Shown: in pieces, positions 8,626 to 63,363 of the stretch
Position numbering within the stretch: the stretch's first letter is position 1
Layout of the letters: every line of letters begins with the position of its first letter
NCBI GenBank assembly: GCA_965637545.1
Contig: OZ281495.1
Location: 12,214,001 to 12,278,000 of the forward strand
From: Phallusia mammillata
Taxonomy: Eukaryota
Length of the DNA stretch: 64,000 nt
Direction of reading: 5' to 3'
Notes under the pieces: model-generated
Told to the model about the DNA's origin: nothing
Seen by the model: only the letters and a program-made list of their open reading frames with translations
Databases searched by the model: none
Made by a program: the position numbers and the translations under genes

Positions 8626-40880
<32,255 letters not shown>

Positions 40881-50900: not shown

Positions 50901-53248
50901 CATGTTTTTCGACCATCTTTTAAAAAAATGTATTTTTTTGTTCTTGGATACCCAATCGGGGCATGAATATGCAAGTTGAATGCTCGTGTCAGTTTGTACA
51001 ACTGCTCGGCCGAGCACCGAGCATTAAAAACAGCGACACCCAGTACAAGTACTTGGGTTCTGTATCGGCTTGGCCCTTCTCGTAAACTATTTATATGCAA
51101 GTTATCTATAAAATTATTTATTATTGCTGGTGGTGTTTTTGTGTCAAAATTTATGATAAATTGTTTCAAAATTAATAACTAAAGTTGCCTATGCATTCCT
51201 AGATTCCACACTAAATCATTATTTTGTTTTTAAACAACAGGTTGCAAGAGGATGAGCCCGATACAACACTATCTGACCCAACCAAAATACAAAAATTTAA
51301 TGGTGGAACCACTAGCACCAACACAATAGTTTTGAATAGCTCTCAAAAACCAGCATTAGTAAGTTTTAAGCTAACTTTTGTATGTAAAACATTTGTTTTT
51401 TTGATTTGTATTTTCTACACAATGTTTAGTGTACAAAGTTAGTTATAATGTTGCAAACAACATTTTTTCATTGAATTTTTGTAAGAAACTGAGTTAATTA
51501 CTTACATTTTATCTTATTCACTGCAGGTAACAACAATCAACACACCCTCGATTAGTAGTGAAAAATCTACTCCAATTATCAACCTTTCACCCTCAACTGC
51601 AATTCAACAGCCTATTGCGTTAGGCACTGCCTTACAGTGTGCTGATGGCTCTCTCAAAATGCCCATCAGTCGTCTGCCCAATCAGAAACCACCCAAGACA
51701 TCTTACTACCTCCTACCAGTCATTTGTACAAAGCAGGAGACCACACAAAAAATGCTGCTTATCCCAACAGCAAACTCCGGTACATCAGGAAGTACACAGC
51801 CTATTTCAAGTATCAAAGTAGGAGAAAAACAGGTAGTGAGGAAAAAACCTGCCATCATTAGAAGTGGAGGAACAACTGCTGGTAAAAAAACAACTAAGCA
51901 GACATTGAAAACAATAAAAATTTTGAAACCCATGAACCAAAACAAAAAAAGTATTGTAAAGACAGCTGGTACAGCAAGTTTGGCAGTTGCCACAAACCCC
52001 AGAAAGCTAAACCATACCGCTAAGCCTGTTACCACATCAGCAGCCCCTACAGCATCCTCAAAACTAGTTGGCAACCAATCAAACAAACCTAGCCTGAGAC
52101 CTATTTTAGCCAAACCCAAGCTAGCTCCCAAAACAGGTACTTTTCTAAACCTGAATGACTTTGCCTCGTCAAACAGTCTCTCCAACATCAATCTCAAAAT
52201 TCATGGATCTACGATAAACATAAACCCATCTACAACAAAGCAAGACCAGACAACCAAGCAACCAACTGCGAGTACTCAGTTAATTGTGTCATCAGGCGCA
52301 AATCCCACAGTAACACTATCCAATGTTCAAAGCGACCCTTTTCCTTCTATACACGCTGCTGAAATTGGACCACTTTCAGTGTTGGAGAAACAGATCAAAA
52401 TCGAGGAGAATATAGTCGACCCTGCTTTGCAGCCGTTCTTGCTTTCCACATCTAGAAATGAGACAGAGAAACAAGACACGTTTGTTGCAAACTTCCTGAC
52501 CGATGGAGTGAAAAGACCGTCTGTGACTGATGCAGCAGATTTGCCTGTAAAGCGAATCAAAATGGAAGTAGAACAAGACGATGTATTACTTGATGTGACC
52601 ACAATTCCAAAAGAATCAAATTTAGATACTAAAACAGAAGATCTTAATGAAGATAAAGAAAACGCACTGTTGGTAACAGACAACGGGCCTTATGCGATGA
52701 CCGACGGACAACCAAGATGCGGGCGCAAGCCACCTATGGATCATCCCTGGGATGACTCCCTACTGGAACATGTCACTTACGGTTTAAGCAAAGGACAACC
52801 AAAACTAACAGATGCAATTTCTGAAGAAGATCTTCCCCTTGACAACGGTGCAGTGCCACAAAGTCGTTTTTGTCAGTACTGTAGCGCCGATGTGTTCCAA
52901 ACAAAATCGTCGGGGGGATTTACAAACCACGAGGCCGGGCACACTCCTACTACTACATACTATTGTAATATTTGTTCGGATTCGTTTCCTTCTGCTCTAC
53001 AACTCCATGCCCACACGGGCACTCACTCAGCCGATGGTCGTATTATGTGCCTGCACTGCGACTCCACCTTTGATGATTTTGTTGAACTCGTGGAACACAG
53101 TGATAATCACATTGATGACCTGCCTTTGCAATGTCCGTTATGTTATAGCAGTTTTTACAACAAGTCTGGTGTAGAATGTCATCTTCGACAACACATCGAA
53201 AAATCTTTTATGCCATCAGTGGCTGTTGTTAACGTGGAAATTAGCTAG
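47956..53248 (+). CDS. Two THAP domains plus four C-terminal C2H2 zinc fingers, 7 coding exons, 875 aa
   Basis: Exons 47956-48162, 48719-48824, 48933-49027, 49306-49527, 50454-50611, 51241-51358, 51527-53248; GT-AG and phase-consistent, 2628 nt. THAP1: MPVCAGYNC...FKFP...KKWL...VCQKHF...ALPT. THAP2: YCSIPMCS...FHTLP...VWKK...ICSIHF...FPSV. Long S/T/K/P-rich linker, then CQYC..H..H, CNIC..H..H, CLHC..H..H, CPLC..H..H. Upstream acceptor at 47908 implies a non-coding 5' exon. Confidence 0.85.
48654..48676. repeat. (AT)n microsatellite
   Basis: Uninterrupted AT dinucleotide run in intron 1 of the THAP gene CDS. Confidence 0.9.
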
Positions 53249-56014: not shown

Positions 56015-58441
56015 ATGAGGTTGGACTCTTCTCCTGAACGTCACAAAATAGTTAAAAGGATTGTGGGTGAGCAAACAAACCTTTTTGATTACATGCCAAC
56101 TGTCCATTTAACATAATGCCACCTTTGCGACCTGTAGCAGTACCAAACGGTTTACTTATCCTCCAAATACAAACCGCACAACCGTTGAATCTGGTTGACT
56201 ACCCAGTTATGGGCTAAGCTAACTTTACAATCAAAAAAATGCCTTCGGACGAACTTCTTAGGTGTTTATGCCCATACCTTTGCGTTATAAATGTACTATT
56301 TGTTTGCTGCTGTTTGACAGGTGGTAATGAGACTACGCCGGGAAAATGGCCTTGGATTGCATTTATTTACTACGACGCAAACCCAGCAGTAAACACAAGT
56401 TATGGTATTTGTGGAGGAAGCCTTTTAACACGTCAGTGGGTGCTTTCTGCATCTCATTGTTTTTTGTAAGTTATCTGTATAACTTACCTTTATACTTTAG
56501 ATTTAGAATGTCTAAAAATCGCACCTTTTTTACGCTACAGGCAACGAACTCCGGCAAGTTACACAGTTGTTTTGGGATTGTTTGATCGTTCAAACCTTAC
56601 TGGACGAGAGCAATTTTTCAACATTTCAAGGGTGGTTGTGCATCCAAACTTTCAAAATGAGACTTACAACTATGACGTTGTTCTGCTGAAGGTTGTCACC
56701 TCAAAAGAATTCAAATGTCCTTTTTAAACCGGTTATTTTTAGCATGGCCTCCTTAAAAGTTTGTCAGGCTAATTTGTTTTGCATAATAGGCTATGTAAGT
56801 TATAGCCCAATGCCTTTTTCATTTTTAAATATCAAGGAACGTTTTAATATGTTTTTGGCTAAGATCGTTATTGCATTAAATTTGAATTTTAAATTTAGCT
56901 CGACCGCCCAGCTGTGCTAAGCCCTGAGGTGACAACAATTAATATGGTTCCACCCGGAACAACCACTGACGTGTTTGGGTCACCTGACGATTTTTCCGGA
57001 ACAGACAAAGAATGCTACACAGCGGGCTGGGGTCAAACTTGTAAGATAGCCCTTATTATTTTAAACATTTAAAGATACGACGCTGTACTTTGAGATAAAG
57101 TTAAGTCATGCCGGGTTTGGGATTAGGTCTCATAAAAAGACGTACTTGATTCGGGCCTGAATTTACAGTCTGTGTCAGTATTTTTTTCAAATAAATTTAA
57201 CCAGCTAAGTGGCCAGTTGCTGGACCTGACCTACATACAGCCCTAAAACGCCTTGTTTAAGACCAATGGTCAATTATTGTCTATTGTGTTTGTTGTGTTG
57301 GTCTTTCCTAAGGGTTCAATGTATAGGGCTGTCAAAACATTCAGGCCTAAACGGGCTTCTCAAAAATGATTCGGGTTCGAGCCGGATTCGGGCTTTCGGA
57401 CATGGGAGGGATTCGAGCTGTAGTTTTCGGCCCGCTTACAAACCTGCTTTGTGAAATACTTGTTAGAGTATGTGAACGTCCAAATTCGTTTTTTTTTGTT
57501 TTGCCAAAGTAAAAAAAAACAGCAATGCTTTTGAACAGCAAACAATTATTCTGTTATTAGTAGTTATGTGTAAATGTTGTCTTCGTCGCTCTACGCACAG
57601 TTCATATCTTTTACAAAAAGACTAAAATCTTATTTTCTAGGCTAATGTGCAAAAGCCAACCTTAATTACCAACGTTTTTGCAGCTAGTCCTATGGGTCCA
57701 ACCGCGGACCGAGTTAAAGAACTGAAACTGAATATTTTCCCCCGTACATACTGCACAATTATAAGTTTGCAATATGGAAGTGGAATTCTGAAAGTTGAAG
57801 ACTCTCAACCGAAGTTTTGTGCCGGTCGTGTTGGACAAGACACTTGCGACGTATGTATACGATATAATTGATTTTCACAAATGTTCGACATGAATGTTTA
57901 TTCGTCTCCTATATTGTAAAATGAATGCGCGATGACTTTAATTTGCAGTGATTTTTTTTTTATCACAGGGAGATAGCGGTGGTCCTGTAATTTGCAAACA
58001 TAAAGACTCAAGGTTTTATCTCCACGGAGTGACTTCGTACGGACCCACCGAATGTGCACGTGGATATCCAGGAGTATATGTAAAGGTATCTGTCCTAATA
58101 AGTTGCTATAGTTACATTTTGCGTAGTTTATATAGTTTGGTTAGCGGAAGTTTTTCGCGGCAAATACACCGACACAAACAGATGTAAAAAACACATAACG
58201 TTTACTCTCCAACGTTGCGGTGAAATTCTGATGTTTTGTCACCAGTAGTTCTTTTTTAGCAAAGTTATGTCACCTTTTCTGCTCTCGGACATTAGCAAAT
58301 GCCCTTAACCTATAGTAACCGTAATTAGCAGTGTTACCAGAAAAACTGCATTTTGTCGTGTAATTGACATTTGATTGTATTGTGTTTTTTAAACAGGTTG
58401 GCGGCGTGGCAAGTTGGATCAATCAACAACTTTACTGCTGA
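56015..58441 (+). CDS. Trypsin-like serine protease (peptidase S1A); 5' signal-peptide exon not located
   Basis: Exons 56013-56066 ([18 protein letters not shown]), 56321-56465, 56541-56691, 56899-57040, 57684-57850, 57969-58085, 58397-58441; phase-consistent. KR-IVGG activation site; catalytic His (LSASHC), Asp (YNYDVVLLK), Ser (GDSGGP); Asp189 (QDTC), Gly216 and Gly226 predict trypsin-like specificity. Confidence 0.9.
57105..57446. mobile_element. Degenerate relative of the 60202-60644 hAT element, in protease intron 4
   Basis: 57240-57446 aligns by eye with 60420-60644 (CTAAAACG...ATTGTGTTTGTTG...GGCCTAAACGGGCTTC...TTCGGGTTCG...GCCCGCTT(A/G)CAA). Left boundary is uncertain. Confidence 0.6.
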
Positions 58442-59297: not shown

Positions 59298-59791
59298 TAG
59301 AGATGTACCGAATATTCGGTTTGCCGAATTTATTCGACCGAATCGGCCACTTTTGCCAAGATTCGGTTTCGGCCGAATAATTTGTTGCGATTCGGCCGAA
59401 ACCGAATCTTTTATGAACACACATTTGAAGCGTTAAGCGTGTCTTTCCTGCTTAGTACCAACGAAAATCCTGTCAGTTATTATATTTTTTACCACATTAT
59501 CGTTTTCCCCACTGCAGACAACTAAATAGTAATTCATTGCCGGGTTGAAAAGTTTGCTTAAGGCAATATTAAACCCCACAGAACTGAAATAAGGACGAAA
59601 CACAACCATTCTGCACTAATTGCCTGGTAGATAAACTTATGTTTTCATGTCAAACGCGTACCGTACGACTTCGCGTGACGTCATAAATGATTCGGTTGAT
59701 TCGGCCGAAAAATTCGGTTGATTCGGCCGGCAAAACCGCCGAATATTCGGTTTCGGCCGAATCGAAATTTCGCCGATTCGGTACATCACTA
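59298..59791. mobile_element. hAT-like MITE with palindromic TTCGGCCGAA subterminal repeats
   Basis: TIR TAGAGATGTACCGAAT / ATTCGGTACATCACTA; clusters of TTCGGCCGAA/TTCGG at both ends. No TSD could be recognised. Confidence 0.7.
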
Positions 59792-59894: not shown

Positions 59895-62800
59895 CTATTT
59901 GTATTCGTTTGCCACCGGTAATTCGTATATTTCGCTTTCCATTGGATGATTTGGCTTTACGTTCATGTATCGGCTGCTGTTGTCTGTATGCATCCCCGGC
60001 CTTTGAGAAGGTCCTGTTTGGTTTGGTCTACAATGATGCTAATGTGTTAGTCAGTCCCTCCACAATGTACATGAATGGGCTATTATTAAAGTTTACCTTG
60101 ATCCCGCGGAGACAGAAACTGATGCCTTCTCGTTTGGAGCAACACGGTAACAGGCAGATAAATGTTCTTTCTTATCTAAAACAGAAAAATGTTATTACGC
60201 CCAGAGTTGCAAGTCGGGCCGGGCTTTTCGGGCCGGGTTCGGGTTCGGGCCGGGTTCGGGCCGGGTTCGGGCCGGGTTCGGGCCGGGTTCGGGCTTAGGT
60301 ATTTGTGAGAAAACGGGCTTAAAACAGGCCTGACTTTACGTTCCGTGTCCGCCATTTAACAAACAAAATAAAATCACTCGGCTAAGAAACTCTGGCTTTG
60401 ACCTAATGCCCACTCTACTCTAAAACGTATTGTTTACCCCATGGTCTACTATTGATCATTGTGTTTGTTGTCTATCTCTTTTTTCTTTCTCATGCTGTCA
60501 ATCAAAATTTCGGGCCTAAACGGGCTTCGCAAAAACGTTTCGGGTTCGGGCCGGGCTTCGGGCTCATACTTTCGGGTTCGGGCCGGGTTCGGGCCGGGTT
60601 CGGGCCGGGTTCGGGCTCAGATTTCGGGCCCGCTTGCAACTCTGATTACGCCTATTAAATATTCTCAAAAACTGAAGTGTTGCATCATGTAACTAGAAAC
60701 TAATTAAAGCCACTAAGAAATATGGACTTCATGTTTGTTGCAAATTTAGAAATTGTTAAAGTCTCAAGTTATATGTTTCCTATGTGTATATTTTGAAAGC
60801 AATTATCACCCCAAAAGCCTAAACCAGTATGTAAAACGTAAGTATCTAAGTAAATGCCATACCTTGGTCTTTGCTTTTATTTCTGATCCAGTCTTTTGCA
60901 ATCTTGAGACTCAAAAGCAGTGCAACCACAATAACACAACACAAGACTGCGATTAATACAATGAAGGTGGAAGATTCATAAGCAGCATTTTGACCATCAG
61001 TACCAGTTTCTGTGTTATCAGTAACGATAAATTTGACTTCGTGGGTTGTGGCAAAAACTTTTGGAGACTTTATCACGATCAGATATTCGCCCAAGTCCAT
61101 TTTGGTAATCTGTAATAGTTCGGTTTTATTACGTATTGATGAAGTTTTAGATTCTCATGTAACATTTGAGGTAAATTACTTACTTTTGTAAAGTGAAGAA
61201 TCACCTTGTTTTCAGTTTGCATGGTGACATAATAGATGTTGCTAACTTCTTTGTCTACAGAAGTAATATTGTGCTATTAGTAATACGATTACGAATTGCA
61301 ATGTATCTCGCCTACTTAACACCCCGTGCATGCCCTTCTGTATTTAGCTCACGTCAGATGTTACCGGATTTCCGTGTTGTTTGCATTGTGCTAATCGCTT
61401 TACAGTGAATTACGCGAACAATTGCATAGTTCGGTCCTTGTATGTCAGTTTTTCGGTGAACTTGCTAATTATTTTTATTTATCGCGATCATTTGACCTCT
61501 CACGATGTTGGGTAGGCTTCCTCCACTATCCAACCGGCTGGTATCCACCCATGTTGCCACACCCAGTTGCGTTGCCCTTCGCGTCGCTCGCTTCTCCAGC
61601 GAGATCCCTAACTTCTCTGTCACGTGTAATTTGTAAACCTAATCTTAAGGGTGCGGCTGCTGAGTCTTTTAACATTACATCTCATAAATGTACCTATGTT
61701 TCAATTGGCGCATTTTCAAACGCAAAGTTTTTGCTACCGTTTCCTGATTCTGTGGCACTAATGTGTTTTTTACCCATGTACCATTATTATATGTCCGGTA
61801 TTAAAATTAATACATAACAAAAATGTCATTACCTTGTTTAAATGCTGTAACTGCACTGTGGCCTAATAAGGTCGGATTGGATTTAAACTTGAACTCCACA
61901 TATCCAGGTTGATGCAAAGTCACACTTGAACGTACAGTGGTGTTTGGTGATATAAGAGGTGGAACTGTAAAGGTTACAAAAATCGTGGCGTTTTCAAAGT
62001 TGTTTGTTGATTGTTTTGTCCTCGTGCATTTTTTCAATGCTGTGGTACGTGTAGATATACCATTTGTAACCATCTTTTACTATTCACACTTTATTTATAT
62101 ATAACTTGCCACCTACTTACATTGCACGTTAAGTTTTACAGCTCTGCTCTCTGATCGATGATGATCATGTGACCTTTGATGGCACGTCACTAGTCTGTTG
62201 TTATCAAGTGGCGTAAGTATCAGTTGTACCCACACAAACTGAGCGAATAGTAAAACAAAACAAAACATTTCATATTGCACCATAACAAACATATCTTTTT
62301 TTTCGGATAACTTGATCCGTATTTTACCTGTTTTCCAATGTATGATTTGTTTCCAAATACAACACTGATATTATCTACATTTGCATCAAACTGATCGCAG
62401 AATAGCAGTACGCTGTCATTATGCTTGAACGTCTGTTCTTTGCCGGCATTGTTCAAATCCAACACTTTACCTGTGTCAGTTTACATACACTTCAGACAAA
62501 ATAAAATCCGTTTGTAAAGCTTTCGATATTGTCGGCGATTTTTACCTTTGTAACATTTTGGTGTTGGACCTTCCCATTGAGCAAACTTGTTACAAGTTAC
62601 AGTGGCTTGACGTCCTATGATAGTTGAATTTTCGATCAACACTGTGTTGTTGCATTGTAAAATTGCCTTGCGTCCATAAACCATGTCTTGTTCATTAAAT
62701 GGTTTGGAAATGATATCATGTTTCAATTTTGGACAATCTATGGACGTTCAACTGATTTGTTATATCCTCTACTATAGTCTATAGCCTATGTTACCAAAAA

Positions 62801-63363
62801 ATCCATATTATCAATAAAAAAAGATTAACTCAGAAATATAGAAATATAGAGTTAACTTACATTTTATTGAGATTTTCGGGGTGACATAATTCATTCTTCT
62901 ACTACAACAGCAGAAAAAAATCCAGTCTTGCAACTGGATTGAACTTTCATTGAACAAGTTTGGTTTTAGTATAGTTATGCGAAAAATACTTCTGTTTGAA
63001 GATTTTCGTTCCTCTTCAATATTAATTAGTGATTGATTGAATACGCTGATGCGGTTGAACCAGCTGGCTATTTGATATGTTTTGTTTTTATACCAGTTAA
63101 AATTTAAGTAATGACTGCCGGGTCTGTACGTAAAGTCAATGTTAATTGTGATGTTTGAAACACCGACAGCCCATTGAAATGACTGATTGTTAAGTCCGTT
63201 CGTCGATGCAACCGACGCGTTCCAACATTCACCTAAAAGTAACACAGTAAATAGTACTTTCTATTTTTGTTGTTAAGTGTATCAACTCACCTCCATATGT
63301 GCCCGTGATCATTACAAAACATAACAAGCTGGTAAAATTCCACTGAATGAGACAAGAATACAT
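59895..63363 (-). CDS. Type I membrane protein: signal peptide - Ig-like - CCP/sushi - Ig-like - Ig-like - TM - tyrosine-motif tail, 10 exons, 519 aa
   Basis: Exons in transcript order: 63291-63363 (MYSCLIQWNFTSLLCFVMITGTYG), 62861-63232 (Ig-like, FNWYK), 62546-62737 (CCP, four Cys plus QWEGPTPKC), 62328-62470 and 62121-62238 (Ig, LLFC...LILTPLDNNRLVTC...LNVQ), 61833-61964, 61184-61254, 60863-61109 (Cys-less Ig, LHFTKITKMDLGEY; TM FIVLIAVLCCVIVVALLLSL), 60097-60175, 59895-60027 (tail ...SRYMNV...EIYELP...EYK*). Phases consistent, 1560 nt, phase-1 domain boundaries. The start Met is inferred; the frame is open up to the acceptor at 63419, so an upstream coding exon cannot be excluded. Confidence 0.75.
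60202..60644. mobile_element. hAT (Ac-type) MITE with GC-rich TTCGGGCCGGG subterminal arrays
   Basis: Perfect 12-bp TIR CAGAGTTGCAAG / CTTGCAACTCTG; perfect 8-bp TSD ATTACGCC (60194-60201, 60645-60652); tandem 11-bp repeats near both ends. Confidence 0.9.

Follow-up and report, generated by a model that had tools for sequence, protein, structure and literature searches.

In Botryllus schlosseri, a colonial ascidian, the fester co-receptors (FcoR), proposed to take part in self/non-self recognition, are composed of a signal sequence, an N-terminal immunoglobulin (Ig) domain (of V type in some members), a Sushi module, two more Ig domains, one transmembrane segment (TM) and a cytoplasmic tail that bears tyrosine motifs (PMC12582321). 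They are 520-610 amino acids (aa) long, and their Ig domains have been termed V, C2 and C2 (PMC12065747). FcoR are encoded at 56 loci, which form clusters on three of the chromosomes and are often paired with a gene of the fester family (FF), although one cluster lacks such partners; members share on average about 32% identity, and FF and FcoR are regarded as related by their authors (PMC12582321). According to these authors, invertebrate allorecognition genes arise abruptly, without homologues beyond closely related species, and our literature search gave no report of FcoR outside the botryllids. Here we describe a gene located in a 64,000-nt stretch of DNA from Phallusia mammillata (GenBank assembly GCA_965637545.1, contig OZ281495.1, forward-strand positions 12,214,001-12,278,000; this stretch is termed the window, and all coordinates refer to it). 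We conclude with moderate confidence that it is a real gene, apparently intact, whose product is a type I membrane glycoprotein with the FcoR layout, comprising a V-like distal domain, a sushi module, two Ig-like domains and a tail that would signal by itself. As this layout equals the one published for Botryllus, we regard the receptor as FcoR-like in its domain layout and in the structure of its gene, and not as a new receptor type. The initial annotation of this DNA, which was made from the sequence alone, had described fester co-receptors as having both Ig and CCP domains as well as tyrosine motifs, and the published descriptions agree with this (PMC12582321, PMC12065747). Its proposal of a location outside the known locus is not applicable, since the known loci belong to another species.

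The gene is located on the minus strand, from 63363 to 59895, and was rebuilt by anchoring splice sites, which yielded 10 exons. The coding sequence is 1560 nt long including the stop codon and encodes 519 aa, all 519 codons being open. A GT donor and an AG acceptor are present at the nine introns, and junction phases are consistent throughout. Seven introns, all AT-rich, measure 58-156 nt. In the larger exons, the frame used is the only stop-free frame. The 519-aa exon chain put forward in the initial annotation was recovered by this reconstruction from the sequence. The introns which separate the signal peptide, domain 1, the sushi module, domain 3 and domain 4 are in phase 1; phase-1 introns at module borders are usual for Ig-superfamily and CCP modules.

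Exon 1 (63291-63363) includes the start codon and a 24-aa signal peptide; its donor leaves phase 1 and is followed by a 58-nt intron. Exon 2 (62861-63232, phase 1-1) encodes the entire membrane-distal domain 1, residues 25-148, and exon 3 (62546-62737, phase 1-1) encodes a single sushi/CCP module, residues 149-212. Exons 4 (62328-62470) and 5 (62121-62238) correspond, by pattern reading, to the first and second halves of Ig-like domain 3, and include the B-strand Cys237 and the F-strand Cys279, respectively. Exon 6 (61833-61964) starts a cysteine-free Ig-like domain 4. Exon 7 (61184-61254) encodes the middle of that domain, and its last residues, LHFTK, make up the first half of an E-F strand hallmark. 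The second half, ITKMDLGEYLI, is encoded by exon 8 (60863-61109) together with the G strand, a Thr/Asp/Gly-rich stalk, the TM helix and a basic juxtamembrane stretch. Exon 9 (60097-60175) encodes a tail segment, residues 450-476, and exon 10 (59895-60027) the tail end with SRYMNV, EIYELP, a C-terminal NEYK and the stop codon.

The predicted protein reads, in order, as signal peptide (residues 1-24), domain 1, sushi module, two-cysteine Ig-like domain, cysteine-free Ig-like domain, short stalk, TM and an 84-aa tail. Its single hydrophobic span comprises residues 416-435 (60906-60965) and is devoid of charged residues. The ectodomain includes 13 N-x-S/T sequons, 7 of them in domain 1, which exceeds the number obtained when the same residues are shuffled (P=0.0014 for the ectodomain and P=0.005 for domain 1). 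With respect to cysteines, domain 1 has C27 and the triplet C132-C134, the sushi module has four, domain 3 has C237 and C279, and domain 4 has none. The single TM, the counts of 13 and 7 sequons and the atypical Ig cysteines (CCC in domain 1 and none in domain 4) had all been noticed in the initial annotation, and we obtained the same counts and positions. As read from its sequence, the gene encodes a type I membrane glycoprotein and is apparently intact.

With the sushi exon as query, phmmer retrieved from the PDB sequences the CCP modules of Crry (the best match, E=2.6e-5), CD46, CR2 and DAF, with E values ranging from 2.6e-5 to 0.4. It includes four cysteines, the conserved Trp and a P-x-C in the CCP pattern, and no other open reading frame (ORF) of the 64-kb window shows the cysteine-tryptophan pattern of CCP modules. 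Upon scanning the receptor exons singly against Pfam, the only match was that of Sushi to exon 3, with a score of 16 bits, which is under the cut-off of 20.7. A single-sequence AlphaFold2 model of this exon had a predicted local distance difference test score (pLDDT) of 41.5. The sushi/CCP module at the second position is established by its sequence.

Domain 4 bears the E-F strand hallmark of Ig domains, L-x-F-x-x-I-x-x-x-D-x-G-x-Y-x-I, with the F-strand Cys replaced by Ile. This hallmark arose in only 2 of 200,000 shuffles of the ectodomain. As its two halves come together only through the splice between exons 7 and 8, it also supports this junction. In domain 3, Cys237 and Cys279 are spaced by 42 and have, as read by eye, the usual hydrophobic flanks. 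Domains 3 and 4 are each divided among several exons, and these pieces, too short or incomplete on their own, gave no Pfam match, and exons 4, 6 and 8 gave nothing meaningful against PDB sequences. As part of the overall explanation that we hold to be fairly probable, domain 3 is predicted to be an Ig domain of C2-like type, closed by the customary disulfide, and domain 4 a cysteine-free Ig domain of I/C2-like type. Domain 1 shows V-set landmarks, namely a W-Y-K at W71 and D127-x-x-x-F-x-C133, with 62 residues from W71 to C133, and is without the B-strand cysteine. Modeled by AlphaFold2 from the single sequence, with no alignment, it is all-beta, with about ten strands, and many V-set domains occur among its structural matches in VIA-align (Z 4.4-5.7); the fold is probably V-like. 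Regarding the Ig-CCP-Ig-Ig ectodomain that had been proposed for this protein, the sushi module stands by sequence match and domain 4 by its E-F hallmark, but domain 1 is only weakly V-like.

The likeness to Botryllus FcoR includes the type I topology, the domain order with the sushi module in second position, and the tail with tyrosine motifs (PMC11507803, PMC12582321, PMC12065747). Size is also alike (519 aa, compared with 520-610). The first domain is found on a single exon, which agrees with the published description of one or three exons in FcoR, and exon 8 covers the junction of the last Ig domain, the stalk and the TM, as described for FcoR33. On the other hand, the present gene has 10 exons and some FcoR have at least 15. 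FcoR tails longer than 60 aa include two or more motifs of the types immunoreceptor tyrosine-based inhibition motif (ITIM), hemITAM, core-1 (YxxI/L/V) and core-2 (PMC12582321); the tail described here is without I/L/V-type ITIM, hemITAM or paired core-2 motifs. It does include a Y-x-N motif, and the FcoR authors report a YxNM motif in none of their receptors. The host, Phallusia, belongs to another ascidian order and is reported to be solitary. Around the gene, there is no adjacent HECT E3 ligase gene, and no paralogue is present in the other 59.9 kb of the window.

Both tyrosine motifs that the initial annotation had placed in the tail, SRYMNV (as a broad ITIM and a YxN motif) and YELP, were found. 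SRYMNV corresponds to residues 494-499 (59958-59975) and EIYELP to residues 508-513 (59916-59933). SRYMNV meets the broad ITIM consensus I/V/L/S-x-Y-x-x-L/V/I solely through the Ser at position -2, and there is no ITIM of the stricter I/L/V-x-Y-x-x-I/L/V form in the 84-aa tail. With respect to the FcoR motif list, YMNV represents one motif of core-1 type, and YRVA, YELP and the C-terminal YK are outside the list. A phosphorylated Y-x-N is a Grb2 SH2 site (as in YVNV of Shc), a phosphorylated Y-x-x-P is an SH2 site of Crk/Nck type, the sequence E-x-E-I-Y resembles the substrate optimum of Src kinases, and Y-x-x-V (YxxPhi) is also a sorting signal for AP-2-dependent endocytosis. When the tail was shuffled, the broad ITIM occurred by chance in 10% of the sequences, Y-x-N in 29% and Y-x-x-P in 29%; being so common in shuffles, these motifs carry little weight unless conservation data are added.

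The length of the tail and the absence of charge in the TM argue for a receptor able to signal on its own, without an adaptor. We infer ligand binding, phosphorylation and any role in immunity or allorecognition along the following lines. The distal domain would bind the ligand, perhaps jointly with the sushi module. Src-type kinases would phosphorylate Tyr510, which lies in the context ESEIYELP, and Tyr496, within SRYMNV, and SH2 proteins would then dock on either phosphorylated residue. Phosphorylated Tyr496 would suit Grb2 (pY-x-N) at least as well as SHP or SHIP (broad ITIM), and phosphorylated Tyr510 would suit SH2 domains of Crk/Nck type (pY-x-x-P). The tail motif argues only weakly for inhibition, and the signal may inhibit or activate.

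Several results weigh against the reading of this gene as an FcoR-like receptor. The check by AlphaFold and Foldseek that had been proposed for the whole protein was run on domain 1: it did yield the all-beta model, but the confidence of this model is low (pLDDT 49), and Foldseek returned noise and nothing meaningful. The top match of the model in VIA-align was the beta-sandwich domain of clostridial Csp proteases (Z 7.5), and V-set domains followed at Z 4.4-5.7, all these values being below 8, under which, as the tool is calibrated, Z may mean only a common arrangement. The V-set matches included NKp44 (Z 5.7, root-mean-square deviation 3.0, 87 residues aligned), TLT-1 (5.5) and a T-cell receptor V domain (5.4), and TREM-1/2, CD300 and CD8 alpha were further V domains listed. 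At the sequence level, phmmer with domain 1 against 1.84 billion representative proteins gave no match at E<=0.001 (a less variable query might be more sensitive), a word search was blank within its range of proteins 0.55-1.75 times the exon length (68-215 aa), and comparison with PDB sequences gave nothing meaningful. Outside domain 1, the tail has one core-1/broad-ITIM motif plus a YxxP, and not the two or more listed motifs of FcoR tails of such length. The 64-kb window includes neither an FF-like partner (Ig-Sushi-3TM) nor a second sushi ORF, and no receptor exon is covered by contigs of four probable RNA runs (four small contig sets from four studies, whose type was guessed to be RNA, and absence from which proves nothing). 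Finally, the argument for kinship with FcoR is drawn from domain layout and exon organization, and likeness of this kind may also arise by convergence.

Such convergence would mean that the gene encodes an unrelated adhesion or tissue-specific receptor of the Ig superfamily with a CCP module, in which the tyrosines serve for endocytosis (YxxV) or for generic adaptors and which plays no self/non-self role. Domain 1 could indeed not be linked by sequence to any family in our searches, Ig and CCP modules on phase-1 exons shuffle easily, YMNV suits the YxxPhi sorting consensus, and the receptor is found without an FF partner in the window and in a host that, as a reportedly solitary animal, does not fuse colonies. 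The match to FcoR nevertheless exceeds domain order, as it extends to size, the single-exon first domain, the content of exon 8 and the tyrosine-motif tail. Furthermore, dense glycans on a distal domain without detectable relatives are typical of fast-evolving recognition receptors, and conserved adhesion molecules normally have recognizable orthologues. We therefore consider convergence unlikely. A different question is whether the receptor, whatever its kinship, is inhibitory, as the initial annotation had suggested. In that case phosphorylated SRYMNV would be a working ITIM that recruits SHP-type or SHIP phosphatases and damps an activating signal. A long tail and an uncharged TM are the usual build of the inhibitory members of paired receptors such as KIR/LILR, and SRYMNV does meet the broad consensus. 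ITIMs are present in some Botryllus FcoR, and Botryllus expresses homologues of SHP-1 and SHIP, but also of Grb2, Crk, Src and Syk (PMC12582321). For the FcoR authors, however, an ITIM is I/L/V-x-Y-x-x-I/L/V, and a sequence of the SRYMNV type would be classified as core-1 (PMC12582321). To this must be added the frequency of the broad motif in shuffled tails, the Asn at +2, which makes SRYMNV equally a textbook Grb2 site, its Y-x-x-V, which lets it read equally as a sorting motif, and the fact that it stands single when many inhibitory receptors have two such motifs. Inhibition through this motif appears to us quite improbable.

It could also be argued that the gene is silent or decaying, or that tail exons 9 and 10 are wrong and the true product is tail-less, ending for instance eight codons into intron 8. 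Besides the absence of exon coverage in the four probable RNA runs, some features of the 3' part of the gene point in this direction. Exon 9, a short one, is less certain than any other, since a second frame through it is free of stops too; the acceptor of exon 10 has a weak pyrimidine tract; there is no AATAAA within 395 nt of the stop codon; and intron 8 houses a miniature inverted-repeat transposable element (MITE). Against this, the 519 codons are open, every junction is GT-AG in consistent phase, and the splice of exons 7 and 8 restores the Ig hallmark exactly. The RNA runs, moreover, are small contig sets of guessed type, with tissue or stage unrecorded. Taking both sides into account, we see only a very small chance that the gene is silent or its tail misassigned, and we maintain the reading of an apparently intact FcoR-like receptor gene.

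Among the sequencing runs recorded as RNA, none contains this stretch. Within the locus, the contigs of the four probable RNA runs fall on positions 60199-60644 alone, except for slight coverage of one bin within intron 6 (61530-61649, run X4). The MITE of intron 8 extends from 60202 to 60644 (443 bp; 60194-60652 with its target duplication), outside the protein-coding sequence, and beyond its ends the covering contigs continue in unrelated DNA. Its termini are 20-nt inverted repeats (CAGAGTTGCAAG...), flanked by a perfect 8-bp target duplication, ATTACGCC, at 60194-60201 and 60645-60652, and it is hAT-like; its interior includes tandem repeats of the 11-bp GGGTTCGGGCC. Many transcript-like contigs from this species contain copies of the MITE, with a depth of up to about 1000 in run X4. 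A partial second copy, located at 57263-57385, shows 77-86% identity to 60438-60554 and is apparently in an intron of the neighboring trypsin-like gene.

This neighbor, a multi-exon gene for a trypsin-like serine protease (56239-58187, plus strand), lies downstream of the receptor gene in tail-to-tail orientation. It includes canonical SASHC and GDSGGP boxes, and two of its exons match Pfam Trypsin (E=1.9e-10 and 4e-11). In the 3' flank of the receptor gene, just past the stop codon, there is a pair of 26-nt inverted repeats (59385-59410 and 59742-59767; 92% complementary) on TTCGGCCGAA-type palindromes, which may be another small inverted-repeat element. Further away, the minus strand includes a WD40 exon (10060-10554; Pfam WD40, E=8.5e-7), whose sequence, read by eye, resembles Groucho/TLE and which we take to belong to a conserved framework gene. 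An Ala/Pro/Ser-rich ORF on the same strand (22495-22992) could belong to the same long gene. A single ORF of 529 aa on the plus strand (51659-53248) encodes C-terminal C2H2 zinc fingers, with weak Pfam zf-C2H2 matches at or below the curated cut-offs.

If layout and exon structure reflect common descent, this gene would be a true FcoR homologue in a solitary phlebobranch, a possibility that we put forward tentatively. The FcoR type would then predate both colonial allorecognition and the split between phlebobranchs and stolidobranchs, and would have had an older role before being recruited to fuhc. Such a role might concern self/non-self discrimination or immunity, for example contact reactions of haemocytes, gamete self-incompatibility or microbe sensing. 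In Phallusia, the FcoR type would lack FF partners and bear a Grb2-type Y-x-N that has not been reported in Botryllus. With homology, it would become possible to trace how a family of chordate histocompatibility receptors arose, and to ask about their function in an animal that never undergoes fusion. In any case, the gene contributes a clean exon map and a caution about taking an ITIM as a sign of inhibition.

With Botryllus FF proteins (fester, uncle fester), the Phallusia receptor shares an N-terminal domain, here probably Ig-like, followed by one Sushi module. FF proteins, in contrast, have three TM and lack both additional Ig domains and tyrosine motifs, whereas the Phallusia receptor has one TM, two further predicted Ig-like domains and tyrosines in its tail; membership in FF was rejected in view of the single TM and the tail tyrosines. 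The CCP module alone is common, and is shared with Crry, CD46, CR2 and DAF. As these proteins consist of CCP modules in series and have no Ig domains, and the receptor has a single CCP module amid Ig-like domains, its assignment as a complement regulator was likewise rejected. Among vertebrate proteins, KIR/LILR, TIGIT and CD226 are clustered receptors of Ig type; TIGIT and CD226 have an 'ITT-like' Y-x-N, and the TIGIT tail joins Y-x-N-V with an ITIM. They resemble the Phallusia receptor in having an Ig or, in Phallusia, predicted Ig-like ectodomain, a single TM and phosphotyrosine docking sites in the tail. They are, however, without a sushi module, and no sequence similarity to them was found in searches with single exons, so that the relation is one of analogy, as the FcoR authors also argue (PMC12582321).

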